Assembly: GCA_964187785.1 (NCBI GenBank)
Contig: OZ076416.1
Span: 54,250,001 to 54,314,000 of the forward strand
Length of the DNA stretch: 64,000 bases
Direction of reading: 5' to 3'
Source: Amphiscolops sp. MND2022
Taxonomy: Eukaryota
Position 1 is the first letter of the stretch; every line of letters starts with the position of its first letter. The notes below the pieces were generated by a model that was not told the DNA's origin, searched no databases, and was given only the letters and a program-made list of their open reading frames with translations. Shown here one piece after another: positions 20,702 to 61,468 of this stretch. The translations under genes were made by a program, and so were the position numbers.

Positions 20702-23700
20702 ATGGCCGCTGGAGAATTATCGGAAGGAGAGGTTGCATCATTAGTAGAAGCGGCAGAAGGAGCGTTAGCTGAGCTATCCAGTTTAGACCATTTGTCGGAC
20801 GAGGAAGGTCTCGTTGCATCAGTGGACGAATTACTAGAGGGTGCGACTCATTCGGTATGTTGTCAGTTTGCCGGGCGAGTAGATGAATCCAATGTGGAAA
20901 CCGCTACTACTTTGCTGGGAAATAGCTCTCTCTAGTGAATTCCGTGAGTACTCCAACAAATTTTCGTATTGTTTTCTTTGTATTGATGATCTGTTGATAA
21001 GGGCAGGCATTTATCATTTTGTGTTTAACTTCGGAACTCATCAAGGTAATGTGTGTGTGTGCATAGCATCGTTAATGCAGGATATGATTAATGAGCGGCA
21101 CTCTGTAGGCTCTTCCCGGGATCTATTACCTTGGGTAGACTGTTGAAACGTTGGTTTTAAGCCGATGAACTGCTTGGCTGATTTTTCCCCATGTGTGTTG
21201 TAGAATCCTTGAATATGACCGATATTGTTGCCATGTTGCGGCGGATGCTACAGTCTAGAGCGTCGTCAGGTGATGTAGCAAGTGTGGGTGCGTGCGAATC
21301 CGAGCTCAGGGGTTACTGCTACACTCAGAGTGGTAAGTGATCAACTTGGTATCTTCTGTATGTTATGGTGTAAGATAGGCATCATTTCAATCATCTACTG
21401 GTAGTACCGTATGACAGTCGTCCCTTGATTTTCACTGACATAAGGGTAATGTTGGAGAGGTCGTTGTTAGGGGTGACGTATGTATGGTGACGTCATTGTT
21501 TACCCTTTTGTAATTTATTCCAGGTGTCGCGAGTGGTTCCGCTTTGAGTGTCAACACTGTGGTGGCTGCAATTACTCGGTTGGAAAAGGAGTTGGCTAGG
21601 GTTGTCAAGGCAACAGTTGAATCCACCCTGGGTCGGTTAGGCACTGTGGGCGCGCTAGCTGTGGATGATTTCGTTCAGCGATTGGTCACGGCTGTATCGC
21701 AGTTGAAAACCTGTCAGTGGTTCGCTTGTTGCCGTCCCTGGATACGATGTGCCTGTGACTCTTACATTGCCTGCTGGGATAGTGTCGGTTGGATCTGCTG
21801 TCCCTGTGACTCCCTCAGTTGCTAGTTTGCAGGAGTCAGTCGCGCCATCATTGTTCGGCGAGAGTGCTGTGTTCGGGCCGGCCAGTGTTGCGAAGTCGGT
21901 TTGTGTTACACCTGGTAAGAATCTCATAAGATCATGAGGGGGGTTTTTAGGGGAAAATTTTAAGTGATTACAAGAGCATCTCCATACTAAGATTTAAAAG
22001 TTTTTTTTGAGTTTCATTTGTTTGTTGCAGCGCGTACTAAAAAGATCAAGACGCTGAAACCTTCTTACTTTGTGTCGAGTGTTGTGGGCACCTTCGTTGG
22101 TTTTCCTTGCAACAAGAGAGTGATTGATGGTTACGCTCGTTGTCTGCTATGCCGGGCGGACCTGAGCATTGCGGGGCGCGGGATCTCATCTCTGTGGGAT
22201 CATTGGAAGGGTGTGGAGCACACCCGTTTGGAGCAAAAATATCGGATAATGACTCACAGACCGCTCTTAGACAAGTCCTGCAGGCCTGTATCAGCAGATG
22301 AGGATCGCCGGATCAGACTTGCTCGTTCTACCGAACCGCCAGTTTTTATGGAAACTGACCTGAACCTGACAGTCGAAGAGCGCATGGCTATTGAAGAAGC
22401 TGAGGCAACCGAAGGGGCGCGACCACATTTGCCGGACGATAGTGTGGGTTATCTGTGGCTGAATAATTTTATATCTAGTTTCCTGGTTGCGAGGTCTATC
22501 GAGGGGGTGCTCTATTCAATGGATTCCTGAAGAAATTGCATGGCGAATGAACTACATTTCGAGTGCCGGACACTGGACTACGCGCGTTGTCAGGTTATTT
22601 GAGATAGTATTTCTTTAACATGTAGAGGGTCGTACCGCGTTGTTAAATCGTGTATAATGCGATTGTTGGGGTTGCTTTGTGGTTTTAATGTCGTTATGTT
22701 CGGGACGTTATTTGTTATTTAGAGTCTGATACTGTACGGGTGTTACCCGTATGTTGTGGAGCAGTTGGATACCCTTGTGGAGGCGAGTTCATGTTTTGGC
22801 GTCAGCATCCGTCGGAGTGGCTGGCAGTGGCGTGGTGAGCTTCACATCATCGGCAATCATGGTGTGAAATCGATGGTGCTCGCTCTGGTGACCGATGGAA
22901 CTGGATGGGAGAAGAGGATGCTGGGTAACGTGGTACCCTTGCTTGCATGTCTGAAGGACAGAACATTGCTAAAAACAGTGGCGGTCGAGGGAGAGACTCA
23001 CGTTGGGAGAGCAGTGGCGGGCATGGTAGCTCCCAAGACGCCTCTCGTGGTTGGGCTGCTAACGGCAAAGTCAGTTTTCAATGAGGTGCAGAGGCAATTC
23101 CGGGTGGAATTTGCAGGATTGGACCCGCTCAGTGTCTTAGAATACTTCCGTGTGAGAATGCTACCTGTAGTCCAGGAGAAGTTTTTGGATCGATTGCCGT
23201 TGTTACGACAGGTGAATATGTTATAAAGTAATGCAAGTAGTTTGCTGAAGTCGCTATTTGTGACTTTAGCTTCTTTTATTTTTGTTTTTTGGAGTTGCTA
23301 AGTGTAGTATAAGGTTTATGTATTCGGACAGCTCTTTGGAGGTTGGTTTTGAAACGCAATTTTGTTTCTGTTGTTCTAGTATGTACGTGTCGGTGGAGAG
23401 GACATCACTCAGTTAGCATCCGTCTGTGCAGAAATTGTGGAGTACTGGAATGATTTATCGTTGTACTTCGGGACTCATCGTCCAAACGTCACCTCAGAAC
23501 TACGGCCGATTACACCACTGGAAATCCAAGTGTTCAAAGACGCGATGATTCGTCCTCGGTTTGCTATCTTGCGGCTCGTTTTGGATTTAAGTGAGTGAGA
23601 CAATAAGTTGGATAGAGGAAGGAGAAAAAAATGTTTTTTTTGAGTTATCTTTTCCGTCGTAGTAGTGAGGACTCATTTGCGGTGTTAAGGCTACTTTTGT

Positions 23701-25082
23701 ACTTTACTTTGTTTGCAGTGGTGAAGCATTGTCCTCGACTGTGTGGACGTGGTCGAGACTACGGCGTTGTTGTGGAGAGGGAGCTAGCTCACTTATTGCG
23801 CGGGTTAATGAGGTTCATTTACCCAGTTACCAGTATTCCTGCAGAGTACGAGATTACAGCATTGCTTCAAGTTATTGACTCTGATTGTGTGGATGTCGAT
23901 GCCCATTTGTACAAGAAACATTTCGGGCAATATTTCCTCTACGACATCAGTTCCCAATTATCCTTCTTTTATAAGGCAGTACAGAAGATGCTGGTGGGTT
24001 TGTGTCGTGGGTTAAGTGGATTGTGGCAACGGACCTGGCCGAATCATCTAAGTTTAACACCGTTTGATCCAGTACTTATACACCAGGGTTCGGATGATCG
24101 TCGTGTGGACTCATTAGTGGAGACCTGTGCTGTATTGACTGCCCACGGACTAGTCGATCTGGACGACGGCGGTGTAGTACAGCAGCAGTACAGAGAAGTC
24201 ACACAATTCTTTAAGAAGCGGTGGTCGTTTTGTGTGGACGAACTTCCTGCTGTGGACGATGTGATTGCTATGTGGCTTTCTTATCCTCATTGGAGTCGGT
24301 GTGCTCAATTGCGCCAAGTAGTAAACCTAGTGCTCAGTGTGGTTGTTGTCAGTAGTTATCAGGCTGAGTTTGTTGACAACGCCGCTACAGCTTTGGACCC
24401 TGATGAACTTGCTTCGAGCTTACATTTAGTTCGTAGTTGGTTCGGACATTCCTTCGTTGGAAAATCACGCCGTGATTTACGTGGCCTAATGCGCATTGCC
24501 GAGACGACGGACATGCAAGTCTCTCGTCTGTCCGATAGTGTTCGGGCCAAGCCCTGGGACCAATTACTGAAAGTCGGGCTGGATCAGAGCTTATCATTTT
24601 GCGTAGCCTTATTGGATAAGGGACCCGAGGCACCTGTAGTGCCTATCGTGGATGAGTACAGGTTGTTTATTCTCGCACAACTGAATGTGATGGAGGTCAT
24701 GGCAGCTAGCCCTATTCGTGTTCCTCCCAAACTTACTGCACTGCCGTCAGGATCAGGAAGTAAGTCTAAAAGGCCTCGCAGTCAATCTGACGTGAAATTG
24801 AAAACGCCTAATAAGGATGCTAATGTGGTTGCGTCTACTATTTCTAAATCTGCCATACTGTCAAAGACTCGTGGTCTCATTCGCAGGAGTAGTGGGAGGA
24901 AAACGCCGTCGTCTACAGGACGTCGAACTGGAGGGAAACCTCAAAGCGGCAAAAAGCTAGTATTGTCATTGGTTGCTAGTGAGTCGGCCGATCAAGAAGA
25001 TCAGTTAACAGATGACGGTTTAGTGAAAACCAGTCGTCGGGGAAAACGTACTATGAGGATCGAATCGTCTGACGAATCCTAA
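20702..25082 (+). pseudogene. Element 1 antisense multi-exon gene: BED-like zinc finger plus hAT-transposase-derived protein; two frameshifts and one nonsense codon in this copy
   Basis: Phase-compatible GT-AG exons 20702-21045, 21204-21332, 21524-21914, 22031-22593, 22723-23211, 23380-23590 and 23719-25082. Zinc finger CLLCRADLSIAGRGISSLWDHWKGVEH. TGA at 22528-22530, an extra A near 21708, and a probable 2-bp slip in (CT)n near 20930 (a 28-nt intron at 20855-20882 is an alternative). Confidence 0.8.
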
Positions 25083-44735: not shown

Positions 44736-45417
44736 ATCATTTCAGTTCGATGTTTTGTTTCCTTCCAAAATCGAAAGATGAGCACACCCTATATGAAATT
44801 TAGATCTTATATCCGAAATATTTGATATTTCTGGTAAGAAAAAAACATAGAGCTATTTTAGATCCAAAAGATTATCCTTCGGGTTTTTATCGGTATTGTG
44901 AAATTGAGAACTTATTAAAAAGAAAATCCTAGACGCTTTATGGAAATTTTGTCTTTCTGTGCAGTTCAAGGGTTGTTTTCACAGAGTATGCAATGTTACA
45001 ATAAAAGCAGAACAATACAACAGCCCAAATAAATATATCCCATCAACAATATCAGTATTGGCCAGCATTGATTAAATATAGACTTCAGATGAGAGTTAGT
45101 TTGGATGCCTGGTAAGTTCATGTTATGAGAAGCCTGGTTTTTTCGAGATCCTATAAGCACTAATAATTACTCACTCGGTCCGAAATTTAGTATATTAGGG
45201 CTGGATAGACGTCCTCAAAAAAAGTAAGGGATTAGATGTCGTCGAGATAAAGATTAAAAGACAGAATTGGCAGGACATTCTAGCTTATAAAAAGCTGAGT
45301 ACTTTAACCATAAATTATATCAACGTTTTTCTAAGATCAACAGTTGCTAGATCTTTGACAAAATTGTCTAAGGTCGAGAACTTTACGAAGTCTTGCAATT
45401 TCAAATAAGTTAATTTC

Positions 45418-47156
45418 TGTCGCAGGCTGCCGCTTGCGATGGGACACGGATCACAACGACTACTAACGAGCAAGAAGCCGTACCAGGTACTTTGCCCACA
45501 TTTTAAGAGAATTTTTCAAAACTTTTAGTAAAACTCACTGTTGTTTTATTATATTCATTATGTATTCGGATTGTATATTAGTCTGATTAATACTCGTGTT
45601 AGAATTCAAGCGGTGATGATTATGCTTATATGATGAATTGCTTAGCAATAACGTAATATAGTAAAGGCAAGTGCAAAGCTTAAAGGAAACGAGTTCAAGT
45701 GAACGAAACTCTAATTCCGGAGACGTCACTTGAGCTCATTTCATTAGCCAATCAGAACGCTCTATCCTGCTGTGCATTATACTATCATATTTGTTTGGCC
45801 GTATACGGCCACTTGACGCTATACCTTATTTTGTAAGCGGAACAAAGGCAAATGGCCGGATTAGGCCATTCCAACTATTAGCTTGTGTAATTGTTTAATT
45901 TGAGTATGCATGTTATTTAAAGTCATGTAAGATTATATTTGTACTTAGAAGGTGCTAATGGGCCTATTTAAACCTAATTGATGTATTTGTGACCACCAGT
46001 CATAAACTCTAAATAATAGTCCGGTGGACTAAACCGGTCGCTTTAATTGGCTGGATCCTTTGTCAAATGGCCGAATTGGGCCACATCCACCTTTTATTAG
46101 TGCATGTAATTGGAGTTGCTACTTGATGAATTAACTTGCGTATGTAGGCACGTGCCTTAGATACCTCACATACCTGTTGACACAAATATTACTTTGAAGT
46201 GTCTGAACGTATATTTGCTTTGATGTTAACTGTTACGGGAATGCGGACTAAACCGTCCCCCGTACTTTGAAGCTATCATGAGTATGTAATTGAGTGCATT
46301 CCTCAGGAATTTTTCCGACCCTAAATTCCTGAATCACTTTGATGCAATAGCTATTTTTTAATACTCGTAAAATTTCACGACCCTTTAGAACATGTAAACA
46401 TTTCAATAATATGTGGAAAATGTGAGTGTCATGCCTCAGGAGGTATATATATACACACCCCCTTCCTGAGGGGACACAAGTTGCTTTCTTTTCACAACGT
46501 TCAGTTCATTGATATTACCAGTTTTCCGAACTAATTCAATATTAACCTCGGACTTTCTTCCTAAATGCCTACCACTAGAAAACAGAAGAAAACATGGAAA
46601 TCTAGAGAAGCAGAAATGCTATCAGACATTGAGAATTTGGATATTATGCTCGGAAGAAATCATTTTGATAGAAATGAGAGAAATGAAAGTGTGAATAGTA
46701 ATCGGACCGGTAGGCCAGAAAGCTTATTCGGAGATGAGTTCGGAGAAGAAAATGAGAATGAGTTCCCAAACCCGGAAAATAATGGACCTAGTCCAAATAC
46801 CGAATTAGGCCATAATTCAATCAGAGAGTGTTCAAGTGTTGAGATCAATAGATTGTCGAGTGAGTTAAATTCCCGTATATCTCGAGAGATGGATGAAATG
46901 ATGAATAGCGTCAGTGTTCAGATCCAGAGAGCCATAAGTGAAGCCATTAGTAGCCAAATTTTGCCTCAAATCCAAAATGCAGTTATGGCCGGATCGGGAC
47001 AATTGACCAAAGAGAGATGGAACGTTCCGGCCGAGAGACCGGAAGGATATTCCGAAGTGCTGCAAAACTTAGAACCTAAGAACAATTCTAAGAGTAAGCA
47101 AGGTAACGACCGTCCCAAAGACGGATTCACAAGCACGAATTCTCGTGCTTACGACA
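45418..47156 (+). repeat. Element 2 5' LTR (1739 bp)
   Basis: Direct repeat of 59700-61442; only about 2 substitutions and two 2-bp indels seen by eye. CCAAT at 45748-45752 and TATATATATA at 46444-46453. Confidence 0.98.
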
Positions 47157-48283
47157 TGGTGACAGGAGAAAACGAATCTCCAATCGAAATTCCTGAGTTT
47201 CTCACGGGACGAATCTCATCCAGAAACCATCTCGACAGGTCCTATGAGGATATTAACCTTGACACGACGATCCCAGCGCAAGAGAGAAATGCTCCGGCTG
47301 CTCAAACTGACCCTATTACTCGACTAGCAGATGTCTTGACAACGATGCAGAATAGGCCGACAGCCCAACAACTCACTATACGCCCAGTCAATTCAAACAC
47401 AATGACTTTTGATGGCAAGAGTGAAAAATTCGAGCTGTTTGAGGACCTGTTCCACACGATGATCAAGATGCAACCGGAAATGACGGAACAGATGAAAATC
47501 AATCACTTCCACTCACTGCTGAGGAAGAATGCTCTCCAAACCTTCCGGAACATCAGCTCGAGCAATAGACAGACTTTAGAGGACGTCTTGATAATATTCA
47601 GACGAAAATACGTCAAACCCGAATCACAGGCAACTGCCAAACATAAATGGCACCGTCTAGTCTTTGATCCCAGCACGATGAAACTGCCAGATTTCCTTGA
47701 AGAACTAAATCAAGGGGCAGAAAAAGCATTCGGGGATCAAGCACAAAAGATGATTGACAGTTTGCTTTACGCAAAACTGCCACCGAAACTAAAGCGGTCT
47801 GTTAACATGGCCAGATTAGAAAATGGCTCATACGATGAGATAGTTGCTCATTTGGAGAGAGAATTAGAGCTTAACGCCCTCGAGGAGTCAGACGATCTAC
47901 CAATAGCAACAATGACCTCCTCATCGACTAAGCCCAAAACTCCTCTGTCCACTGGGCAAATGTCAGACATTACCTGCAATTATTGCAAGGAAAAGGGCCA
48001 CATGGTAAAGGACTGCAAAAAACTCAAAAAGAAAAAGGAAAAAGATGCCCAACAAGGCAAACAGACTCAGAAAAAGACGTATCCGGAGTGTGGTACTTGT
48101 GGTAAAAAGAACCACCCCGAGGAAAGATGTTGGCAAGGCGCCGGTGCGCATCTCAAACCCAAACGCAACAGACCAGATGACGCCAATGACGGAAAGCCCA
48201 ATTCAAAGGCGCAGAAACCGCAAAACAAGTCAACATCTTCAAACTCACAATCCTCATCTTCTAATGATGAGTTAAAAAACTAA
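46565..48283 (+). CDS. gag: Element 2 Gag (572 aa) with two CCHC knuckles; the first 197 codons lie in the 5' LTR
   Basis: CNYCKEKGHMVKDC and CGTCGKKNHPEERC; capsid region similar to element 1 gag. Confidence 0.95.
   Translation: MPTTRKQKKTWKSREAEMLSDIENLDIMLGRNHFDRNERNESVNSNRTGRPESLFGDEFGEENENEFPNPENNGPSPNTELGHNSIRECSSVEINRLSSELNSRISREMDEMMNSVSVQIQRAISEAISSQILPQIQNAVMAGSGQLTKERWNVPAERPEGYSEVLQNLEPKNNSKSKQGNDRPKDGFTSTNSRAYDMVTGENESPIEIPEFLTGRISSRNHLDRSYEDINLDTTIPAQERNAPAAQTDPITRLADVLTTMQNRPTAQQLTIRPVNSNTMTFDGKSEKFELFEDLFHTMIKMQPEMTEQMKINHFHSLLRKNALQTFRNISSSNRQTLEDVLIIFRRKYVKPESQATAKHKWHRLVFDPSTMKLPDFLEELNQGAEKAFGDQAQKMIDSLLYAKLPPKLKRSVNMARLENGSYDEIVAHLERELELNALEESDDLPIATMTSSSTKPKTPLSTGQMSDITCNYCKEKGHMVKDCKKLKKKKEKDAQQGKQTQKKTYPECGTCGKKNHPEERCWQGAGAHLKPKRNRPDDANDGKPNSKAQKPQNKSTSSNSQSSSSNDELKN
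47157..47168 (+). other. Primer binding site TGGTGACAGGAG
   Basis: Immediately after the LTR end and identical to the element 1 PBS. Confidence 0.85.
48274..48280 (+). other. -1 ribosomal frameshift heptamer A AAA AAC (gag/pol)
   Basis: TTA AAA AAC TAA at the gag end; the -1 frame CTA ACT TTG CCA is the pol frame. Confidence 0.82.
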
Positions 48284-51200
48284 CTTTGCCACGACTCCAA
48301 TACAACGAACTGATATCCGTCCGCCAATACATCAGGTCGGATCCTCCAACGCAAACTTTCCACCAATACAATCAGCAATTGATGGGCTATCCCTCTGTTG
48401 TCTGGCAGCAACAGATGGACAAGGCTACCACCATCACCTATAACAACACCCATTTATTCCAAAAACCAATTCCTGTTTGGGACCCTGACTATACCACTAC
48501 CTTCACTACCCGGTTCAGGCCCATTCCCCTGGTAGATAATTACAATCCAACGTACATCGACCCAGACTACGGCAGAGATCCCTATTGGGACACCGAGATT
48601 TACAACCAAGATTTACTGCAATTCCAGTACGTTCTAGATGATATCGAACATTACAATCGATCAGTCCACGAGAATCCTCCCATCACCCACAATAAGAAGA
48701 CCAGAGCATTAATTGAAAACTGGCAAATGAATGATGGCACGAACCACCCAGTGTTCCCAAACCCATTGGAGACCGAGAACCATGACAACAATACTGAACC
48801 CATACAGCAATCACTACTAGATGAGAAACAATTCCAAAATGTCCTAATCACAAGGGACGGCGAACCAGACTGTATACCTTTGTCAAACAACATCAATCTC
48901 AAATGCAAGAAACGCATGTTGTATTTCCCAATGGACTTTGGGGAATTGACCATTGATGGACTCATCGACACTGGAGCGCTGTCCAGTGCAATTCCTGAAA
49001 TGGACATCCGGAAAATCCGACTTTTATCTCCACAATCTGTTATCCGGGAAGGCCCGCCTCCGAATTTCCAAATTATGGTCGCTAATGGGCAATTGGAAAC
49101 CCCCAAGAGTACCATAGAGCTCAAATTTGAAGTTGGTGACATCGAATTTCACGAGATTTTCATAGTCATGGAACACCTGACAGGTCCGATCATTGGACTA
49201 ATGTTCCTTCAACGAAATCATACAGTTCTGGACATGAGACAAGGAATACTAAATTTCCCGTTCTTTTCAATGCAGCTCAAAACAGCAGACCATAAGTACT
49301 CAAACGTACTTGAACCAATCCTCAACCCTGCTGAAATAACCATTCCGCCAAATGACAGAGTCCTAATCCGAACTAATTCCCTACTCTACCCTGAGAATGC
49401 TGTCACTGGAATTTTGCAACCGAGCGACCTTCTACATGAGGAAGGCGACATCACATTTTGCCCAGCTTTGGTCACTCTGAATGACGGCAATATATTGATA
49501 CCAGTGAACAATTTCACAGACCACCCCTATAAACTCAAAAAAGGACTCCATATTGCCAATTTCTCTGTTATGACGCCAGAACAAATGAAATATGTCAAAC
49601 CGGTGGACCCGGCATCAACCTGGCATTTTTTACAGAATGATCAAGAGCAGGCAGCCCACTATGTCAGCAGTCTCATCAAAACTAATAGAAATCCACAAAA
49701 CTCCGAAAATTACTGGTTCCCAACCACAGAAAATCCTGGAAATCCCGAGGAACATACACCGATACAAAAACGAATCCTCCAGGAATTACAGGCCTTACAA
49801 GACCTCGAGACACTTGACCCTACTCAAAATGAAGAATCACGTACAAAGTTCTTAGAAAATTTCGATTGGAAAGATTCCATCCTTACTCCTGAAGAGAAGG
49901 AGAAAATAGAGGAATTGTTAGTGGAATTCCATGACATCTTTGCACGACACCGATTTGATATAGGCATGAACGAAGACTTCAAGGTGAAACGGACACCTAA
50001 AGACGATTCCCCAGCCTATAGTCAAAGTCTTCCAGCCCCTATCAACTTGAAGGAGGACATCCTAGTCGAATTAGCCATGTTGCACAAATATGGCATAATA
50101 ACCACACTACCGTTCTCGAAGTATGCAAGCCCAATATTCGCCCAAAAGAAACCAAATGGGAAGCTACGACTTTTGGTTGACTTGAGAAAAATCAACATCC
50201 TCATCTCGGATGATTATATAAACAATAATCACCCTGTTAGCACCCTTGTTGATGCCGCCCAACACTTGGCAGGCAAAAAACTGTTCTGTAAATTAGACTG
50301 TTCGCAGGCATACCACTGCCTACCAATGGCTGACCAACGTTCAATCGAAATGCTGGCTTTCAATTTTGCCAGTCGCACATTCGCTTACAGACGCTTAGCA
50401 CAAGGCCTTAGTCGGTCACTATCCGCATTCTCGAGTTTCATGAGGGAATACCTCGACAAAGTCATTAAAGCGGATCAGTGCGCCCAGTATGTCGACGATA
50501 TCGGCATCGCAGCCAATGATGTCGACCACCTCATGACGAACCTGAGAGCAACATTCAAATGCATTCAGGAAGCAGGCCTCAAGTTGACAATGCACAAATG
50601 TCACTTCGGTGCAAAAGAAATTGATTTTCTCGGACGGACTATTACCCCGCAAGGAGTCAAACCCCAGAAACAGAACGTGCAAAACTTTCTGGAAAAGACC
50701 AAATTCCCAAAGTCAAAAAAGGCTTTGCAGCGCTACTTGGGATTCCTGAACTACTACAGGAATTATGTCCCAAGACTCTCCGAACGCCTTGCTCCATTCT
50801 ACAAGATGCTCAAAAGTGACGAAAAGGTCCTAGTATCGAAAGAATTAGTCCAACAATTCGAAGAAATCAATAGAGCGCTAGACAAATGTTGCGACTTAGC
50901 CCTACAGCAACCCATTCCGAACAAGCAAATAGCACTAATGACTGACGCAAGTTTTGGTGCAGCCGGATACGCGGTCTTAATTGAAGATGACCCGAACCAG
51001 AAATTCACGTCACTCAGGAAATCGTATGCTCCAGTCGCATACGGATCGAAAACTTTCACCCCAGCACAGATAAAGATGTCAATTTACGCAAAGGAATTCC
51101 TTGCAATTTATTTTGCATTTAAAGAATTCGGACATATATTCTGGGGTGCGCCGAAACCAGTCATCATCCTTACCGACAACAAAGCAGTCACGAGATTTTT

Positions 51201-53484
51201 CCAAACAAAAATAATACCCCCAGCCCTATGGAACGCGTGTGATTATGTCATTCAGTTCAATTTTGTCATAGCACACATCCCAGGGGCACAAAATACAGCC
51301 GCCGACTACTTGTCCCGATTGGAAGCAGATCCAAAGGACAAATTAGTAATGAAAATTCGTGAAGATGTACAAACACTACCAATCGAAATCAATGTCCAAT
51401 CCGCAGGGGTGTCGCAAGAAGAACAAATCTTCTACACCAATGACGACGATGAGACAGAGGAACAGTATTGGGCAAGAAAAGAAGCAATCAGGAAAAATCC
51501 AGCAACTGATGAGCCCACTGTTACTATACAAACTCTGTCAACAAATCTGGTCAAACAACACCCCGATATACAAGTCCGATTGAGGAAAACGAACCAGATC
51601 ATTATTGAGCAATCCAAAGATACAGTATTACAACAATTGAAGGCAAAACTCCTTCATGAAGACTATTCAGAAAACATACTGCAACAGGATACTCGATATA
51701 GACACTATGCAAATAATCTGGAACGAATCGTACTCAAGGACGAAATCCTGACGAGGCAATATTTTGATGAAACAGGGAATGTTAAATACCATCAAATTCT
51801 ACTCCCGCAACACTTACTCCGGGAATTGCTTCAATCCCTTCACGGGACAGCGCATAAACACCCCGGGATTTCAAAAATGCTACAGGAAATTAGACAGAGG
51901 TATTACTACCCTAGCATGGCTAAACACGTCAAAAAGTGGGTAGAAGGGTGTGAACAATGTGCCAGAGACAAGAGAGTCCCTAACGCAACGATCACACCCG
52001 AGCTGCTCAACTTGCCCGAATGGGACCTTGGACCTGAAGACGCTATGCAGATTGACCTATTGCCGAATCTTCCCCCAAGTGGAGGGTATGAAAATGTCCT
52101 AACGGCAATTGATGTTTTCTCCAGATATTTATTTGCTTACCCTCTCACGGACGCATCAGCTATCAACGTGGCAAAAGCGCTCATTGATATAATGACTAAA
52201 CACTCATATCTACCAACGACTCTTATCACTGATAAAGGTACTGCATTTACTTCTACAATTATCGCGGAAATTACGCAGATTTTGGGCATTACACTCAAAT
52301 GCGCCACGACGAAGCACCCGCAGACAATTGGGAAATTGGAGCGAACTCATGCCTCATTGAAAACAAATCTCAAAATGGCATGTGGAGAATATCGCCGACA
52401 ATGGCACAAATACTTGCCATTAGCAGTACTGAATCATAATACTAGCTATCACGCCAGCATCGGTTGTGAACCGACGAGAGTATTCCATGGAAGAATTCCA
52501 TTTAATATCTTGGATCACAAACTTGGAAATAATCCAAATGAGCAGATTAACCCCACAACCGAATTTGCTGAAGAAATCCAAAACCAGACAAAAATCCTAA
52601 TTGATAAAACGAAACAGAACATTATGCAGTCGTACATCAAGTACAAAGAATATTACGACCGCAAAGCAAAAGCTGCTCCATTGAAGGAGAATGATTACTG
52701 TTTCGTCTTACAGCCGAAAGCGGATCATCAAGGATCAAAAATTCCATTCCGCGATTACCGTTGGGTTGGACCATTTGTAGTCCAAAAGGTTTTGCCAAAT
52801 GAAAACTACATAGTACGAAGGATCAATACGAACAAAACTCAAATTCTGCATCGCATTCGTCTTAAAAGATTCATTCCCAATCAACCGCTTGAGGACAATT
52901 TCCGAGAACAACGTCTACAGCCAGATGAAGAAATTGTCATTCCGCAAGACGACTTATACGTCATAACGTGGGAAACAGACTTCGGCGAACAGCTAGTTAC
53001 ACGAGGCAACGAACCTATTCCGACTAGCTTGCCGAACGGCGAACGACCGAATACGGCAGAAACGAATACAAGTGACGTAACCGAGAATGAAACGGATTAC
53101 ATAATCACGCGAGAAGAATTAAACAACGACAACGCGACACACAGCCGGAATGAACGCTTGGATGATGACGTCACTGAGAGAAATAAAGCTACTGCAGTGA
53201 CAGAAAATACCAAATCTGATTGGCCGAATCCGGCCGTTTCCCCAAAAAACCAAGAAAATTCTTTACCGAGTACGGCAAATGGACCGGAAAATGATGAAAT
53301 TTTTTCAGAAAGAAACCTAATGAATGAAAACGATGCACAAAACTCTCAAAAAAGGTGGGATGATATTATCGTGCCCGAAATATCTGAAAACGATGCTAGA
53401 AATGAAAGTCTGAGCCCTAGAGGAGGGAAATATAATCTCAGGCCTAACCCTAATCCGAACTACTCAGAAGACTTCAGATACTAA
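48280..53484 (+). CDS. pol: Element 2 Pol: aspartic protease, RT, RNase H, integrase (intact frame; ORF-track start 48286)
   Basis: LIDTGA, YVDDI, TDAS, HGTAHKHPG...CEQC, QIDLL, TDKGTAF, LERTH and GPF; ends YNLRPNP. No env or chromodomain recognised. Confidence 0.97.
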   Translation, partial: LTLPRLQYNELISVRQYIRSDPPTQTFHQYNQQLMGYPSVVWQQQMDKATTITYNNTHLFQKPIPVWDPDYTTTFTTRFRPIPLVDNYNPTYIDPDYGRDPYWDTEIYNQDLLQFQYVLDDIEHYNRSVHENPPITHNKKTRALIENWQMNDGTNHPVFPNPLETENHDNNTEPIQQSLLDEKQFQNVLITRDGEPDCIPLSNNINLKCKKRMLYFPMDFGELTIDGLIDTGALSSAIPEMDIRKIRLLSPQSVIREGPPPNFQIMVANGQLETPKSTIELKFEVGDIEFHEIFIVMEHLTGPIIGLMFLQRNHTVLDMRQGILNFPFFSMQLKTADHKYSNVLEPILNPAEITIPPNDRVLIRTNSLLYPENAVTGILQPSDLLHEEGDITFCPALVTLNDGNILIPVNNFTDHPYKLKKGLHIANFSVMTPEQMKYVKPVDPASTWHFLQNDQEQAAHYVSSLIKTNRNPQNSENYWFPTTENPGNPEEHTPIQKRILQELQALQDLETLDPTQNEESRTKFLENFDWKDSILTPEEKEKIEELLVEFHDIFARHRFDIGMNEDFKVKRTPKDDSPAYSQSLPAPINLKEDILVELAMLHKYGIITTLPFSKYASPIFAQKKPNGKLRLLVDLRKINILISDDYINNNHPVSTLVDAAQHLAGKKLFCKLDCSQAYHCLPMADQRSIEMLAFNFASRTFAYRRLAQGLSRSLSAFSSFMREYLDKVIKADQCAQYVDDIGIAANDVDHLMTNLRATFKCIQEAGLKLTMHKCHFGAKEIDFLGRTITPQGVKPQKQNVQNFLEKTKFPKSKKALQRYLGFLNYYRNYVPRLSERLAPFYKMLKSDEKVLVSKELVQQFEEINRALDKCCDLALQQPIPNKQIALMTDASFGAAGYAVLIEDDPNQKFTSLRKSYAPVAYGSKTFTPAQIKMSIYAKEFLAIYFAFKEFGHIFWGAPKPVIILTDNKAVTRFFQTKIIPPALWNACDYVIQFNFVIAHIPGAQNTAADYLSRLEADPKDKLVMKIREDVQTLPIEINVQSAGVSQEEQIFYTNDDDETEEQYWARKEAIRKNPATDEPTVTIQTLSTNLVKQHPDIQVRLRKTNQIIIEQSKDTVLQQLKAKLLHEDYSENILQQDTRYRHYANNLERIVLKDEILTRQYFDETGNVKYHQILLPQHLLRELLQSLHGTAHKHPGISKMLQEIRQRYYYPSMAKHVKKWVEGCEQCARDKRVPNATITPELLNLPEWDLGPEDAMQIDLLPNLPPSGGYENVLTAIDVFSRYLFAYPLTDASAINVAKALIDIMTKHSYLPTTLITDKGTAFTSTIIAEITQILGITLKCATTKHPQTIGKLERTHASLKTNLKMACGEYRRQWHKYLPLAVLNHNTSYHASIGCEPTRVFHGRIPFNILDHKLGNNPNEQINPTTEFAEEIQNQTKILIDKTKQNIMQSYIKYKEYYDRKAKAAPLKENDYCFVLQPKADHQGSKIPFRDYRWVGPFVVQKVLPNENYIVRRINTNKTQILHRIRLKRFIPNQPLEDNFREQRLQPDEEIVIPQDDLYVITWETDFGEQLVTRGNEPIPTSLPNGERPNTAETNTSDVTENETDYIITREELNNDNATHSRNERLDDDVTERNKATAVTENTKSDWPNPAVSPKNQENSLPSTANGPENDEIFSERNLMNENDAQNSQKRWDDIIVPEISENDARNESLSPRGGKYNLRPNPNPNYSEDFRY

Positions 53485-53698: not shown

Positions 53699-56600
53699 CT
53701 AGTCTTTAGAAGAACCTTGGACAGGCTTCTTAGAAATTGAGGAAAGACTTGAGCTGTTGCTACCCTGCCTTTTTCTTCGCAACTTAGAAGGAATCTTCAG
53801 AGCAGACTCATCGGGGACGGATGAAACACTCCTCTCCTCCAAGCGAACTGAGCGAGCAACAGAGATGGATGTAGTGAGCTTATATGAAGCCAATAAGCTC
53901 TTATAAATTCTGGATCGCCCAAACACATCAACATACGTCCACGGGTCATAATCAGCACCAAAGGCAGACTGTTCGAAGGTGGCACTGAGATGCGAAAATT
54001 TATCCAAATTGGCATCGGTCACGCAACCAGAGATGGAATCAGGAACGGAGGAAAGATAACTTTGACAAGGCAGGACCAAATCAGTAAAGCGCCCACGATA
54101 TCCAGTGGTGTCTACACTCCCAAATAACACAGGAGGATACTGAGGACTGGAACTAGTCAAACACAGACAACACAATTTGAACAAATAAAGCAAATGTTCA
54201 TGAGTCTGGAAGAACTCTAGTCCCATAATGAAGTCGATGAGGTCCTTGGAATTCTCTAGGAGATCGAAGTCAGGGGGGTAGCTCACTCGAAGATGGTCCA
54301 ATAGGGCGATGTATTCCTCCCGGCAAGCATCCTCGTTGGCAGATGAGACCCAAGACCGATGTTGGAAGGTAGCGTATAACAAATCGAAGTGACGAAGGCC
54401 GACTTCTGAAGGTCTTTTGAATAAAATGAAAGGGTCGAAAGCTGCCAACCCCTTCACAATCTCTGATCGTAATCCAGCCTGATTGAGAACCTCCTTCAAG
54501 AGATACTGTACGAAGTGGAGGCCTTCCCTGGCAAAACTGGAAGTTGCCTCATCCGCCGTCTTCTCAATTGCAGCCTTCTCAGACTTCTTATTTAGGTGAA
54601 CGATTTCAGCACTCTGTTTGCTTGCAGTTGCTACTTTGTTCACCAAGCGCAGTCGAACCAGGAAGTCCTCCTCAGTAAGGAACTTGCCTTCACTGACGGC
54701 GAAACCAAGCAAGAGGAACCAATCTTTCTCGACAGGGATCGTTTCAGGCAGATAACAACGGGAGCACAACTTGGAGATGAATCGGCAGACTTCCCCACAA
54801 AGGAAGAAAGTAGCATCTCGTCTGCCTTGAAGGTTGACAACGAAACTGGACACGTCTGAAACACAACCGGTCACATGAAAAAACCCAACCGCATGCCTAA
54901 ATGACTAACCGAGGAAACAGGGCTTACTGCCCTACCAGGATTCAAGAGTTTGGGATATGAAGCTAGAAGCGAGCAGTGATAAACCCAAAAGGTCCGTATA
55001 CTTACAGTCACTGATAATGCGTTGGAAGAATTCCAATTTCACAACAAAGAAGGTGTCGCAGATGAGGGACCATTCAAAGCTCTGAACCTGTAACATGATC
55101 TAAGTAAGTCACATGCAACTGATATCGCCGGTCCATTAACCCATTGACTTGGAAACCAACTCATTGAAATTCAAAAGGCCCGAAGAGGATCCTTACCTGA
55201 TTATGAACCCCTTGCATGCCTTGATGGGGAGTGTGAGCAGTCAGAAAGGAACGCACTGCTTTCCAGTTTTTTGACAAGTCACGACAGAGACCAGGGAGAT
55301 CGGGCAAATTCAGTTTGCAAGTGGAAATAGCCTAAAATGGACCACTATTAAACAGGGAGTCCTGTGTACTAGTTAACACTATCGACGTGTGAAAGGAAAG
55401 ATACTAACTTGAAGTAATTCGGGTGATTGCATGGCCCAATCCTCATCGGCAGCAGATCCTAAGGACACCAGTAAGCTCTTCAACACGGAGAAAAAGTCGA
55501 TTCTGCCGAACACACTATAAGTAGGTTTGCGCATCATGGTCTGCAAATCCAAATGTTCGAATCGAAAACAGCTCTGTACTGCTCGTGGAAATAGTGCACA
55601 TCTGTCGATAGTACAAATCAGCTCAACGGGGCAGCCGGAACAAGCAACTATGTCTGCCTTGTTAGACACGACCGAGAGAAATCTGGAAAGGGACCCCAAT
55701 TCTCCTGTCAAGTCGGTTGAAGGAAGCCCACTTCGACAAACGAAGACTCTACACAGTGAGTCTCCCTTCCAAAATCTCACAGACATTAGCTTGTTGACTC
55801 CAACCCGTTCGTACTCGAGCCCAAAGCACTGTGTTGCCGCTATTTGTTCTGCCATGTCCTCCATGGCACAGTTGAAGATGTGCTGGAAGATCGCCTTAAA
55901 AGAAAATAGGAATATTAATTCGGATATTTACAGTGCACCTCGATAGTGAAAAGAAAAAAACAAAACTACCAACCGAGACTCTATCTTCACTCCAGTCAAA
56001 ATCGCAGTAGCTGGCTTGGTAGTTGGTTAGGGAGCCGACCTGTGACCACATCCGCCGTAAAATAGAAAGGTCTCCCTGATGCTGCACAAAATCTGCGATG
56101 AGGTGAATCTGAGTCTTGGCACGAGACGCTGGAGTTACGAGGGTGGTCGCTGTTCCTTTGACGAAATCGTCGTAAAAGGGGAAACGTTCCCCGATATCAA
56201 CCAACTCGGCATGTATGAACAGAGGAGTTCTTTAGCCAGCTCTATCTTGGTCAGAACTTTGCCGTTTCTGCCCCTCACACGGTGTTGCACCTTGCCAGTG
56301 ACAGGATGGACGCTTTTTAGGTGCTCATAACGCCATCTCTGGTCCTTGCGCAAGTGTTTTTCTGTCCGGTGATGTCGTAGAATCTCCAGAGTGCCTTTGG
56401 TTTTCACGGAAAAATTCTTCTTACAGATATGGCACCAGACCATATGGGGATTGTGCAATGGGTCGGCTGGTCCAGAGATGAAAGATCGGGTCCACCCAAT
56501 CTTCGCAAAGAATTCCTCCTTCATGGGGACCCCTCTAGTGGGCCCGCGACGCTTCTTTTTGGATTCTTTACGAGTCTCGCTTGGACGCGGTACTTCCTGG

Positions 56601-57985
56601 TGACGCAACTCTGACAATGTTGCATCCAAGCTTGATTGCCCAGTCGACTCATGACCTTCATCTCGACGGCCGACATCTACTATTCTTTGGCTGGTCGGAT
56701 CAGGTTCAACCAAGTTAGGCTCTTTGAAAGCCTGAGAAATTAGGGCCATTTCCGCGGAACTGTCAGTCTCGTTGGGGGAATCGAAAACCCCATCTTCGCT
56801 CTCAGTATTGGGGTCACCGGCAGAATCCGTACTTGAGCCAAAATTGTCGTAACTCTGTGACCCATCACTGCTATCACTGAGGTCTCGTGGATGAGGAGTT
56901 TGTGCCCTGCGTCTGATTTTGAAATGGTCCGTACGAGACTTGGCCGTAACTGGAGCTCCTCTGACTGCACCTAACACCATTTCTTCCATGGTCGTATAAG
57001 ACATTCGCAACGTCTCGTCAGCAAGAACACGGAGGAGGTGATAAACCTGTGGTTCCGTGAATGCGACAGTCCGATGGCCTAGAGGAAGAGAGACAGTTGT
57101 GGCATCTTCATCAAAATATTGTTTCAGAATAGCCGTACTCCGTCCGGATAACTCCCTCAATTCAGAATGAGTTGGACCTGAGGGACCGGGTCTAGACTCA
57201 GCAGTTGGGTCTTTGGGACTATGAGTAAGGGTGTCTTCTTCACTCGATGTTGGGTTGTGGGGTGCAGGGATAAAACTGTATAACTCGGGACAGCTAATCT
57301 GACTTGTCCCATCCCCTGTCTCTTCTGTCTCGGTTCCCCCGTCTAGGAACCGCACCTTGGTTACTCCTTGGGGAAGCTCTGGGGCGTCACAGAAGGACGA
57401 ACTATCGTCAGTCTCGTGCTGGAGGAAAGAAACCGCAGACGTTTCATTGTTAGAATGTCCGGCTGGTAGTAATTCCGGTAAAGTGGTTCGGGAGGAAGTA
57501 GCAACCTTTAGGCCACTTTCCAACTGGGTCAAATCCATCTCCAGCTGGATATTGGAAGTCCCTGGAGTTGGGGTGCTGGCACGAATGTTTGGGGAAATCG
57601 GATCAGTTTGGATCGGATTGATGGGTGAGACGCTGGTAGCACCCTCCCTGGCCTCCGTTGGCTCTCTTCCCTTGGCTTCTTCAGACTCACCAATCTTCTC
57701 GGGAACGTTGTCGGCTAAGTCGATATTCGGAGTTGAAGTCAACCCCTGAATGTGCTCGTAAACCCTGACTCTTTCTTCAGCATATGCAGTGACATCGACG
57801 TTACTGTCAGTACTGCTGGGAGAGATGGGGGCTCTGAGGGGAGGAAATGGCGGTGGAGATGGCATCACATTCGGTGTAGACTGGATGTGGGAATCAGAGG
57901 CTGGTGTTTGTTCTTCCTCGGTATTTTCATTCCCTAAATGGAAGGAGATAAAATTAGGCGGTATGCTTCCTTGGAAGAAATCCAT
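53699..57985 (-). CDS. Element 2 antisense five-exon gene (about 1290 aa): acidic disordered N-terminus, BED-like zinc finger and hAT-transposase-derived region; one 1-bp frameshift near 56224
   Basis: Exons 57985-55974, 55894-55409, 55331-55197, 55087-55006 and 54855-53699. GT-AG introns of 79, 77, 109 and 150 nt with compatible phases 0, 0, 0, 1. Zinc finger WCHICKKNFSVKTKGTLEILRHHRTEKH. Adding one C at GAACTC(C)CTCTG restores the frame. Confidence 0.82.
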
Positions 57986-58918
57986 TTTACCGCGTTAGAA
58001 AACTTCTAGAAGTGCCTTTCAGTGTGACTATTTAGTCGAAACATGTGAAACAAAAACAGAAACAGGAAGCGTTTGTGAACAAGTTTTGTCTCTGATCAAG
58101 TCAAAATTGTTCAGTCTATTGAAAGAAAATCCAGACCAACCTGATTTTGAAGCCATGAAGCTGCTCCTTTTGGAAGATGAGACGTAAGTCTACAGGAGAG
58201 AGTCTGTGGAGAAAGGCCGAATACGGCGATGATGGAAGATCAGGAAACAGCAACAAAGTTCGTGAAGTGTAACAGCGGGGAATCCCAGGAGAGGAAAATT
58301 GCAAAGATAGAAGAATTGGAATTGGGTAAAGAATTGAAAGTTGGAGTTCGTGGCTGAAGATTTACCAGACTAATATTATTTGATTATCTACATATTTAAA
58401 TCTGTACACGGAGTCTGCCAGCGAAATGTACAGGACGTATCTCGCTATTTACAACCTTGTTACAATTAGTGGCCGATTATGGCCGTTTACCCTTATTCAT
58501 GTTGCCGCTTTGTTCAGTTTTCCTAGTTACCTTAGTTAGATTTTCGCCATTTTAGTTATTCAGAATTATTATTTTCCGCCATCTTTATTATTCATTTTTC
58601 CAAATTTATCGAAGCTCAAATTTGATTGGCTGAAGCCATTTCAGTGAGTTTCATCAGACAAGTACCGTTAATTGCTATCAAGCTTGGTGTTGATTACCCA
58701 CTCGAAGTGGAATTATTTGTTGTTGTCAACTTAACACCTCTTTGCATACTCACTTGAGAGAGTGAGACAGGGGGGTTCCATTCCGAATTTCAAAGGACAA
58801 ATAAGCCGCTGAGAAATTCCATTCTAGAAACTTTACGACGGATCAGGGCGATTGGCCATGGTCTCTCCCGCCGAAATGGGACTCCGGGAAAATAGCCTGA
58901 ATAGGCCTGAAGAAAATT

Positions 58919-59788
58919 TTGACAAATTCATTCAACTTTGAATCCTGCAAGCAACAAGTCGCTCTGCGAATCAACAAAATTGCAAAAAAGATAATAATGG
59001 CTAAATTTAACTTAGCAAGAAAGCTTTTCGACTCAGAGGAATCGGACTCAGAAGCCTCCGTAAATTCAGTCATCTACCTATCGAGTGACGAGGAGGAAGG
59101 CACTTCATCTACCTCATGGGACTCCGATTGGTCCACAGACACCGAGGCTATCATAGAGAGAATCGAGAGGGAAGTCAAGTCAAGCCCAATTTTAATCGCC
59201 GGCCGCAAGATGACTGTGGAGGAGCAGGCTACAGAATCAGCAGCCGGACCGAGTAACCTTCGAATGTGGCCGCCTTCGACCCCGAAATTGGGATTCAAAC
59301 AATTTGACGAGAAACTTCTGTATGCACCGATGAGAAAGGCAGAAAGAACCCGGATAGAACTTTGCAACACAATTCTACCAGTGTTGGAATCGCCGTTGTC
59401 TCCGCCCGAACATGAGAGAGGGCCGTCCCAAGACGTATTCATGGAACAACCAGTTAGCACCAGCTTCCACGCATCTTACCACATCCAACAAGTACAGCCG
59501 TATTCGGATCTTAGTAGACAGTTGGGCCGTGGATGCATGGTCTGTGGGAGATCAGTGGACGAAATTAAACAAGAGAAAGTGAATTGGTACATGAATAGAT
59601 CAACGCCGCGCAATGAACCAGCTTATATAACGAACTTGAGGAGGGAAGCCTATGAGAATGGTCTAAACGCCGGAAGTCTTCTTTTCTTAGCACTCGCAGT
59701 GTCGCAGGCTGCCGCTTGCGATGGGACACGGATCACAACGACTACTAACGAGCAAGAAGCCGTACCAGGTACTTTGCCCACATTTTAA
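58919..59788 (+). CDS. Element 2 extra sense ORF (289 aa; first ATG at 58997) with acidic N-terminus, SIM-like motif and CxxC; ends inside the 3' LTR
   Basis: Uninterrupted ORF containing VIYLSSDEEE and CMVCGRS; the last ~29 codons lie in the LTR that starts at 59700. Confidence 0.65.
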   Translation: MTNSFNFESCKQQVALRINKIAKKIIMAKFNLARKLFDSEESDSEASVNSVIYLSSDEEEGTSSTSWDSDWSTDTEAIIERIEREVKSSPILIAGRKMTVEEQATESAAGPSNLRMWPPSTPKLGFKQFDEKLLYAPMRKAERTRIELCNTILPVLESPLSPPEHERGPSQDVFMEQPVSTSFHASYHIQQVQPYSDLSRQLGRGCMVCGRSVDEIKQEKVNWYMNRSTPRNEPAYITNLRREAYENGLNAGSLLFLALAVSQAAACDGTRITTTTNEQEAVPGTLPTF

Positions 59789-61442
59789 GAGAATTTTTCA
59801 AAACTTTTAGTAAAACTCACTGTTGTTTTATTATATTCATTATGTATTCGGATTGTATATTAGTCTGATTAATACTCGTGTTAGAATTCAAGCGGTGATG
59901 ATTATGCTTATATGATGAATTGCTTAGCAATAACGTAATATAGTAAAGGCAAGTGCAAAGCTTAAAGGAAACGAGTTCAAGTGAACGAAACTCTAATTCC
60001 GGAGACGTCACTTGAGCTCATTTCATTAGCCAATCAGAACGCTCTATCCTGCTGTGCATTATACTATCATATTTGTTTGGCCGTATACGGCCACTTGACG
60101 CTATACCTTATTTTGTAAGCGGAACAAAGGCAAATGGCCGGATTAGGCCATTCCAACTATTAGCTTGTGTAATTGTTTAATTTGAGTATGCATGTTATTT
60201 AAAGTCATGTAAGATTATATTTGTACTTAGAAGGTGCTAATGGGCCTATTTAAACCTAATTGATGTATTTGTGACCACCAGTCATAAACTCTAAATAATA
60301 GTCCGGTGGACTAAACCGGTCGCTTTAATTGGCTGGATCCTTTGTCAAATGGCCGAATTGGGCCACATCCACCTTTTATTAGTGCATGTAATTGGAGTTG
60401 CTACTTGATGAATTAACTTGCGTATGTAGTCACACGTGCCTTAGATACCTCACATACCTGTTGACACAAATATTACTTTGAAGTGTCTGAACGTATATTT
60501 GCTTTGATGTTAACTGTTACGGGAATGCGGACTAAACCGTCCCCCGTACTTTGAAGCTATCATGAGTATGTAATTGAGTGCATTCCTCAGGAATTTTTCC
60601 GACCCTAAATTCCTGAATCACTTTGATGCAATAGCTATTTTTTAATACTCGTAAAATTTCACGACCCTTTAGAACATGTAAACATTTCAATAATATGTGG
60701 AAAATGTGAGTGTCATGCCTCAGGAGGTATATATATACACACCCCCTCTTCCTGAGGGGACACAAGTTGCTTTCTTTTCACAACGTTCAGTTCATTGATA
60801 TTACCAGTTTTCCGAACTAATTCAATATTAACCTCGGACTTTCTTCCTAAATGCCTACCACTAGAAAACAGAAGAAAACATGGAAATCTAGAGAAGCAGA
60901 AATGCTATCAGACATTGAGAATTTGGATATGATGCTCGGAAGAAATCATTTTGATAGAAATGAGAGAAATGAAAGTGTGAATAGTAATCGGACCGGTAGG
61001 CCAGAAAGCTTATTCGGAGATGAGTTCGGAGAAGAAAATGAGAATGAGTTCCCAAACCCGGAAAATAATGGACCTAGTCCAAATACCGAATTAGGCCATA
61101 ATTCAATCAGAGAGTGTTCAAGTGTTGAGATCAATAGATTGTCGAGTGAGTTAAATTCCCGTATATCTCGAGAGATGGATGAAATGATGAATAGCGTCAG
61201 TGTTCAGATCCAGAGAGCCATAAGTGAAGCCATTAGTAGCCAAATTTTGCCTCAAATCCAAAATGCAGTTATGGCCGGATCGGGACAATTGACCAAAGAG
61301 AGATGGAACGTTCCGGCCGAGAGACCGGAAGGATATTCCGAAGTGCTGCAAAACTTAGAACCTAAGAACAATTCTAAGAGTAAGCAAGGTAACGACCGTC
61401 CCAAAGACGGATTCACAAGCACGAATTCTCGTGCTTACGACA
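59700..61442 (+). repeat. Element 2 3' LTR (1743 bp)
   Basis: Direct repeat of 45418-47156. Confidence 0.98.
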
Positions 61443-61468
61443 ATTTCCTTCTACATCTGCTCGACTAG
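60851..61468 (+). CDS. Copy of the Gag N-terminus in the 3' LTR reading into host flank (205 aa)
   Basis: Matches the first 197 aa of gag except one I/M change, followed by 8 flank-encoded residues. Confidence 0.8.
   Translation: MPTTRKQKKTWKSREAEMLSDIENLDMMLGRNHFDRNERNESVNSNRTGRPESLFGDEFGEENENEFPNPENNGPSPNTELGHNSIRECSSVEINRLSSELNSRISREMDEMMNSVSVQIQRAISEAISSQILPQIQNAVMAGSGQLTKERWNVPAERPEGYSEVLQNLEPKNNSKSKQGNDRPKDGFTSTNSRAYDNFLLHLLD

Follow-up and report, generated by a model that had tools for sequence, protein, structure and literature searches.

The window analysed here is a stretch of 64,000 nucleotides (nt) of Amphiscolops sp. MND2022 (assembly GCA_964187785.1, contig OZ076416.1, positions 54,250,001 to 54,314,000). 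It contains two long terminal repeat (LTR) retrotransposons of different families, named element 1 and element 2, and its transposable element (TE) content looks animal (DUF1759 gags, a non-LTR element). Element 2 is a Ty3/gypsy-type LTR retrotransposon that carries a gene of five exons (57985-53699) between pol and the 3' LTR, on the strand opposite to its gag and pol. The stop codons of pol and of this antisense gene are 215 nt apart, and the two genes converge. The first-pass annotation of the window had proposed a five-exon antisense gene with four short GT-AG introns, and the open frames, the sequence and the homologous copies bear the proposal out. Its arithmetic was recomputed and is right: the frame comes to ~1290 amino acids (aa), exon 1 (2012 nt) is one short of a multiple of three, and the exon sum (3872 nt) is one short of 1291 codons.

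The long open frames of the minus strand lie at 57994-56138, 56231-55899, 55927-55382, 55331-55164, 55099-54935 and 54904-53702. GT...AG junctions join the exon frames, and all four intron 3' ends are pyrimidine-rich. The DNA around twelve database relatives (L001-L012) was compared with the window copy; L001-L007 and L012 belong to a single assembly, the one in which the window's own open reading frames (ORFs) are also found, L008, L010 and L011 to a second assembly, and L009 to a third. The resulting intron table covers 38 introns in 11 copies, namely the window and ten relatives from two assemblies. Exon 1 (55974..57985, minus strand like all parts of the gene) follows from the open frames and the sequence, and an exon-1 ORF search returned 267 protein clusters, most of them 660-690 aa long. 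It is followed by intron 1 (55895..55973; 79 nt, phase 0, GT...AG), constant in position in all copies at lengths of 75-135 nt. Exon 2 (55409..55894; 486 nt) is predicted to fold into a sheet of three strands, a helix, a strand and a helix, which is the RNase H-like order, and intron 2 (55332..55408; 77 nt, phase 0, GT...AG) is again constant in position in all copies (70-112 nt). Exon 3 (55197..55331; 135 nt) has a tblastn match in all copies. Intron 3 (55088..55196; 109 nt, phase 0, GT...AG) is present in the window copy and in L002, L003, L004, L007, L008 and L010. Exon 4 (55006..55087; 82 nt) ends in phase 1 and shows 74-100% aa identity in all copies; intron 4 (54856..55005; 150 nt, phase 1, GT...AG) is constant in position in 10 copies (69-169 nt). 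The last exon, exon 5 (53699..54855; 1157 nt including the stop codon at 53699-53701), encodes a helical domain and a disordered basic and Ser-rich tail.

The gene was found in every full element compared, in the equivalent place and antisense to a Ty3/gypsy pol; absence from full-length family members, a possibility raised in the first-pass annotation, was thus not observed. When the window exons were used separately as tblastn queries, L001-L008 and L011 each gave all five in unchanged order; the sequence of L010 is truncated on its 5' side inside exon 2, and in L009 only exons 1, 2 and 5 were matched. Introns begin with GT and end with AG at equivalent protein positions in 37 of 38 cases. 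The remaining one is GC-AG and belongs to L003, a decayed copy with a stop in exon 3 and a shattered pol. Intron lengths vary by non-multiples of three, and introns are 55-75% identical in the same pairs of copies in which exons are 70-87% identical; the exons keep their length across copies, and the introns drift. It is this cross-copy comparison, and not the arithmetic of the frame, that excludes a chance origin of the gene model. Intron 1 is in frame and stop-free (75-129 nt) in some copies (P0366, P0402, P0412, P0446 and L008 2109-3386), where its retention would insert only 25-43 residues. The 844-aa ORF P0366 was considered as an allele without intron 1 and was rejected, since the ORF caller had read through an in-frame, stop-free intron.

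Intron 3 is precisely absent from L001, L005, L006 and L011, in which exons 3 and 4 are fused in frame, and intron 4 is precisely absent from L010, with an exact in-frame junction. A maximum-likelihood tree built from the last exon places L006 as sister of the intron-3-bearing L004 (support 100/100) and L001 together with L005 as sister of the intron-3-bearing window clade (support 100/100). On account of these placements, intron 3 was lost independently at least twice. Precise intron loss is generally attributed to a spliced mRNA that is reverse-transcribed and then recombines. These losses are therefore the best available evidence for the existence and the splicing of an antisense mRNA, which we infer from the compared sequences.

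Selection on the gene was estimated per exon from the ratio of nonsynonymous to synonymous divergence (dN/dS) by the Nei-Gojobori method. The ratio is 0.045-0.093 between L002 and L003, 0.045-0.085 between the window and L003, 0.041 between L001 and L005 and 0.11-0.13 between the window and L002. Exon 1 has an overall dN/dS of 0.13, with 0.06-0.26 in its disordered N-terminal half; in the remaining pairs synonymous sites are saturated, at dN of 0.1-0.5. The pol gene gave dN/dS of 0.014-0.056 between copies (1001 codons). The window and L003 form the only pair congruent in both genes (dS ~0.6-0.7), and here the omega values are 0.085 (last exon) and 0.056 (pol). Purifying selection on the antisense gene is about as strong as on pol. 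The gene is also abundant. The last-exon ORF matched 207 protein clusters at E≤0.001, most of them ~390 aa long and 50-99% identical, and a last-exon profile search matched 659 clusters at the 50% level among 1.84 billion representatives; none of the matched clusters carries a protein name. Among the best 120 clusters, the last-exon ORF reaches ≥375 aa in 71 and the exon-1 ORF ≥650 aa in 80, and full-length exon ORFs occur by the hundreds in the same genome assembly and in at least two others. On two points raised in the first-pass annotation, dN/dS across family copies and intactness of the copies, the outcome thus does not refute a maintained gene: dN/dS is far below 1 and most ORF clusters are full length.

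The window copy has a single frame break at 56224..56227 (minus strand), defined as a one-base length difference from L002. The frame of exon 1 switches between 56231 and 56138; the 616-codon ORF that begins at the ATG stops at 56135, and the second exon-1 frame is open from 56231 to 55899. The sibling copy L002 is 99% identical in exons 2-5 and has an uninterrupted exon-1 ORF of 690 aa. A whole-gene alignment of the two copies contains 124 differing columns and three indels (exon 1, intron 1, intron 4), and the sole exonic one is that in exon 1, where the window is one base shorter. The break lies inside a motif that is kept by all family members, and the other copies keep one frame across the site. 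Within the window's 90% cluster most exon-1 ORFs are 684-696 aa long, and the 616-aa form occurs on one contig only. The frame break is private to the window copy among the copies examined. The first-pass annotation had placed the gene one base from intact and had predicted the text that a restored base would give; the first point is confirmed by the single exonic indel, and L002 reads the predicted text naturally. The break might alternatively be an assembly error in a gene that is actually intact, given that it is a one-base length difference within a short run of like bases and that the contigs appear to be a long-read assembly. This is unlikely. The run is very short, which is atypical of long-read errors, and shortened exon-1 ORFs are also seen in 7 of the 15 members listed for the window's 90% cluster. 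Moreover, the two LTRs of this copy already differ by two indels over 1.74 kb, so that a real indel in 3.9 kb of coding sequence is to be expected and fits decay after insertion.

The 5' LTR of element 2 (45418..47156, plus strand, TG...CA with termini read) is paired with the 3' LTR (59700..61442, plus strand). The two are 1739 and 1743 nt long and 99.66% identical, and differ by two 2-nt indels and two substitutions. An identical target-site duplication, ATTTC, lies outside both LTRs (45413..45417 on the left, 61443..61447 on the right) and is intact. The gag ORF (46565..48283, plus strand, 572 aa) has DUF1759 and zf-CCHC matches just under the Pfam cut-offs. The pol ORF (48286..53484, plus strand, 1732 aa) matches Pfam RVT_1, RT_RNaseH, Integrase_H2C2 and rve, and its domain order by Pfam (protease, reverse transcriptase, RNase H, integrase) is of the Ty3/gypsy type. 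Both gag and pol are open. With the LTR identity and the intact duplication, this makes the insertion young, in agreement with the first-pass annotation, which had called it very young. The sequence directly after the 5' LTR, where a primer-binding site would lie, begins with TGG. No purine-rich tract was found in the 40 nt before the 3' LTR (59660-59699), where a polypurine tract is expected. The gag ORF begins within the 5' LTR, and 592 nt (46565-47156), the first 197 codons, are LTR-encoded; this ORF start recurs in the 3' LTR (60851-61468) and in both LTRs of all related copies.

The region upstream of the antisense gene (57986..58435, minus strand) is a candidate internal promoter and 5' untranslated region (UTR) of that gene, a role suggested by conserved non-coding blocks at 58380-58339, 58156-58131, 58070-58059 and 58013-58002 (minus strand), which show invariant sequence or compensatory changes among copies. 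The blocks are conserved among copies whose proteins are ~50% identical. They include a 12-nt palindrome with a TTCnnGAA core, the centre of which changes from TA to CG in a compensatory manner. The block at 58156-58131, ~150-170 nt upstream, contains an ATG and a donor-like motif (AG, then GTTGGT after the junction) and may mark a 5' UTR exon. Its interpretation as a coding mini-exon was rejected, as all acceptors in the vicinity of the main ATG lead into a stop. Further upstream, and divergent from the antisense gene, lies a second accessory gene, the sense ORF3 (58919..59788, plus strand, 289 aa), which extends 88 nt into the 3' LTR. ORF3 is open in seven of seven copies with dN/dS of 0.09-0.16 and has no Pfam match.

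The antisense gene and its carrier differ in their histories. In LTRs, gag, pol and ORF3, element 2 shows 91-94% identity to L006, but at 53488-58330 only 64-73%; this stretch corresponds exactly to the antisense cassette plus the proximal upstream region. Likewise, the identity between element 1 and L012 is 94-96% except at 20267-25246, where it is ~67-69%. Seven copies compared with the window have identities of 81-94% in pol, of 64-75% in the antisense gene (except L002 and L003) and of 68-71% in the LTRs (except L002 and L006). For the window and L001, dS is 0.30 in pol and the cassette is saturated. The window and L002 show the reverse pattern, with dS of 0.31 in pol and 0.04 in the cassette. 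In the same pair dS of exon 1 (57985-56231) is 0.128, three times that of exons 2-5 (~0.04), a contrast that suggests a recombination breakpoint inside the gene. The contrasts in identity and dS indicate that the cassette alleles are old and have been dealt among backbones by recombination. Such reassortment is compatible with a role in which the identity of the allele matters, although it does not demonstrate one. With cassette, ORF3 and LTRs exchanged around a gag-pol that stays conserved, the family clearly exemplifies modular evolution of LTR elements.

The minus strand carries element 1 (LTRs at 18647-19852 and 32882-34082, 98.8% identical), whose pol is in pieces. Antisense to that pol, at 22018..25082 on the plus strand, collinear weak matches mark a remote homologue of the element 2 gene, with ORFs at 22018-22530, 22756-23226 and 23631-25082. 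A tblastn search of all open segments of element 1 against element 2 returned nothing significant, and the homology was detected only by targeted pairwise and profile comparison. The finger block, which includes the stretch aligned in the first-pass annotation, matched the natural L002 sequence at E 2e-6; the start of exon 2 matched that of element 2 at E 0.003, exon 3 at E 2e-7, and the last exon, by profile-profile comparison (38 against 26 sequences), at E 1.2e-4 with a probability of 55% over 210 columns. The layout is shared as well, with introns at equivalent places in both genes in the comparison with L012. In element 1 the finger exon runs to 22593 with a GT donor at 22594, exon 2 occupies 22723-23211 (163 codons against 162 in element 2), a fused exon 3+4 without intron 3 starts at 23380 and is followed by a short intron, and the last exon ends at 25082. 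The finger exon has an in-frame stop at 22528-22530, where the relative L012 reads on in frame. The homology between the two genes, proposed in the first-pass annotation, is supported by the four collinear weak matches and the matching layout. The pol genes of the two elements are only 44-46% identical, and the presence of homologues in both therefore places the antisense gene before the split of the two lineages. The distance between the antisense stop and the end of pol is ~1.6 kb in element 1 (25247-26806) versus 215 nt in element 2; this interval is 94% identical to L012 in all frames and contains no long ORF. A non-LTR retrotransposon ORF with an apurinic-type endonuclease and a reverse transcriptase (34929-37727, minus strand, 932 aa, open) adjoins element 1. 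A single tRNA gene match at 1943-2013 (plus strand) was the sole Rfam match.

The encoded protein was examined by alignment, domain search and structure prediction. In 43 aligned exon-1 ORFs, a 15-residue N-terminus and an island at about residues 279-355 are conserved; the N-terminal half is otherwise disordered, with long variable acidic and Ser- or Pro-rich stretches between the conserved islands. The same alignment shows a basic cluster (56560-56546, minus strand), a conserved C2H2/BED-like finger of the form CxxC...H....H (56434-56354, minus strand) and a conserved block from the finger to the end of exon 1. A second basic cluster is present at the end of the last exon (53785-53765, minus strand). 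The only Pfam finger model that came near was zf-BED, with an E-value of 0.086 in element 1 only, which is below the cut-off. No bZIP match was obtained in any piece, no Transposase_28/TRP28 (PF04195) match among the pieces and members, and no hAT dimerisation domain (PF05699) in 38 members. The AlphaFold2 (AF2) model of the last exon (70 sequences) is all-alpha, with a predicted local distance difference test (pLDDT) score of 76.7 overall and >90 for residues 20-240. The middle part was modelled from a natural ORF, P0366:558-836, with an in-frame and stop-free intron 1; here the mean pLDDT is 54.6, with 65-82 within exon 2. The exon 2 model consists of a helix, three antiparallel strands, a helix, a strand and a helix, again the RNase H-like order. 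The top Foldseek hit of the middle part, Hermes 2bw3_A (E 0.012, TM 0.25, probability 0.85), is not significant; eight more Hermes chains stand in the top 20, then RNase H domains of reverse transcriptases, RuvC-type resolvases and integrases. The predicted order of a finger, a beta-beta-beta-alpha-beta-alpha core and a helical region would be shared with hAT transposases and their domesticated BED-finger derivatives (for example Hermes). However, nothing in the comparison is significant, the helical C-terminal model does not match Hermes, and a dimerisation domain and a conserved catalytic triad are lacking. A transposase origin of the middle part is a lead from modelling and not a result.

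The antisense gene is in all likelihood a genuine, family-wide accessory gene of a Ty3/gypsy clade, placed antisense between pol and a sense ORF; its product, translated from a spliced mRNA, would be nuclear and would act in trans. In the genomic RNA the introns are present as reverse complements, which the spliceosome cannot remove, and because of this the intron-bearing gene comes through every cycle from RNA to cDNA. The first-pass annotation had argued that introns antisense to the genomic RNA are not spliced out of it; the orientation implies this, and introns are indeed retained between copies with saturated synonymous sites. Transcription would start from an internal promoter within ~57986-58435, the antisense pre-mRNA would be spliced, and occasional reverse transcription of the spliced antisense mRNA, with recombination into the element, would account for the losses of introns 3 and 4. 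The ~1290-aa product may be a nuclear nucleic-acid-binding factor composed of basic clusters, the C2H2/BED-like finger, an RNase H-like core that is probably inactive and possibly derived from a hAT transposase, and the helical C-terminal domain. It would act in trans for the family, and a copy in which gag-pol is open and only the accessory gene is broken could still rely on its siblings. Since constraint on the gene is on a par with that on pol, the gene probably belongs to the life cycle of the element and is not baggage. Candidate roles include promoting expression, countering silencing and guiding integration. Help with propagation has slightly less than an even chance of being the role, and some other role is nearly as plausible.

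Several observations weigh against this reading. The window copy's own antisense gene is broken, and about one third of the listed ORF clusters are shortened. Pfam searches at E≤1 gave no genuine match for any piece or for 38 family members and no family that recurred among the members, PDB-sequence searches with two profiles gave no match, and Foldseek found no neighbour of the helical C-terminal model in PDB or BFVD. The likeness to Hermes and RNase H, which comes from a low-confidence model at E 0.012 or worse, is weak; no acidic triad is invariant, and the first strand has no invariant acidic residue across both families. On the minus strand, the 1.2 kb that follow the stop contain no canonical poly(A) signal, and a TATA-like motif upstream of the gene was likewise not found. 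Expression and splicing are read from the evolution of the gene only.

Among other explanations, the gene might serve not to help propagation but as a self-limiting regulator, either by copy-number control or through an antisense transcript that feeds small-RNA silencing. The antisense mRNA converges on the end of pol without overlapping its coding part, and with stops only 215 nt apart a long 3' UTR could form double-stranded RNA with the genomic RNA. This possibility has been raised in reviews for plant antisense accessory ORFs (PMC7264820), and the evolutionary data do not separate a helper from a brake. We nevertheless regard a regulator of this kind as improbable. A brake that is dispensable in cis should decay fast in a selfish lineage, and omega is close to that of pol; a role of the RNA alone would not hold codon constraint or ORF length. 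Far less probable still is a passenger, that is, a host gene or a nested DNA-transposon gene captured once and without function for the element. The weak Hermes-like fold matches and the BED-like finger do suggest a transposase origin, and LTR elements have been documented to capture foreign ORFs (PMC5408684, PMC7264820). However, the gene has been retained in two lineages with pol only 44-46% identical, at dN/dS of 0.04-0.13, full-length ORFs persist in most clusters, and splice sites are kept in 37 of 38 introns. An origin by capture is compatible with a present function, and a lack of function is not supported. That the product is an active hAT-like transposase, giving the element a second, DNA-level mobility, is scarcely credible: Hermes chains top the Foldseek list, but an acidic triad conserved across both families, a hAT dimerisation domain and a transposase Pfam match are all missing, and the ends are LTRs with a 5-bp duplication and not hAT-type inverted repeats with 8 bp.

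A more specific history of the accessory gene is offered tentatively and is on balance doubtful. A Ty3/gypsy clade, probably of an invertebrate animal, may long ago have taken up a hAT-like DNA-transposon gene and kept it as a reassorting, intron-bearing antisense module, with old, strongly diverged alleles on near-identical gag-pol backbones. Such a pattern would be expected if the protein takes part in a specificity or arms-race interaction, for instance against host silencing. The repeated precise losses of introns would then show that the reverse transcription machinery of the element copies the spliced antisense mRNA, which returns to elements by recombination.

Antisense accessory ORFs (aORFs) between pol and the 3' LTR are known from plant Ty3/gypsy elements, among them maize Grande (gene23), rice RIRE2 and Silene/angiosperm Retand (with TRP28), where they occur in most family members and are suspected of a regulatory function; the Grande antisense ORF has its own internal promoter and a nuclear product (PMC7264820, PMC11963269). 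The element 2 gene is alike in the position of its antisense ORF between pol and the 3' LTR. It differs in its four conserved introns, as introns are unmentioned for the plant ORFs in PMC7264820 and PMC11963269. It differs further in the lack of a match to TRP28 or any other Pfam family, in the animal look of the TE content and in the extra sense ORF alongside. The parallels to VANC and HBZ drawn in the first-pass annotation are analogies only. No sequence or fold similarity to either was found, and for VANC no search aimed at it was made. VANC of Arabidopsis VANDAL is a TE-encoded accessory protein that serves its family in trans; it belongs to DNA transposons. HBZ of human T-cell leukemia virus type 1 (HTLV-1) is a minus-strand protein gene of an LTR retroelement, and its main mRNA is spliced. 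The HBZ gene begins in the 3' LTR and contains a single intron, and its product is a small bZIP protein, whereas the element 2 gene has an internal start, four introns and a product of ~1290 aa that lacks any bZIP signal. HBZ is mentioned as an antisense retroviral gene in PMC11963269. Antisense RNAs of Drosophila TART contain multiple introns that persist through retrotransposition (PMC1636488); unlike element 2, TART belongs to the non-LTR elements, and no conserved protein is known to be encoded by these RNAs. The literature searched yielded no account of an LTR element that carries a conserved antisense gene with several introns, which is not proof of absence. Antisense accessory genes of LTR elements are known; distinctive here are the four conserved introns, the new protein family, the companion sense ORF and the reassortment of the cassette.

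Because retrotransposons go through RNA in each cycle, loss of introns is expected of them; placement on the opposite strand lets a multi-exon gene be carried over the long term. The family is at the same time a natural record of the rare copying-back of a spliced antisense mRNA. As an unannotated family present in hundreds of clusters, the protein is a candidate for a new kind of retroelement accessory factor. Twenty years of discussion have brought no function for the plant antisense accessory ORFs, and an abundant, conserved case with both broken and intact copies makes the question testable.

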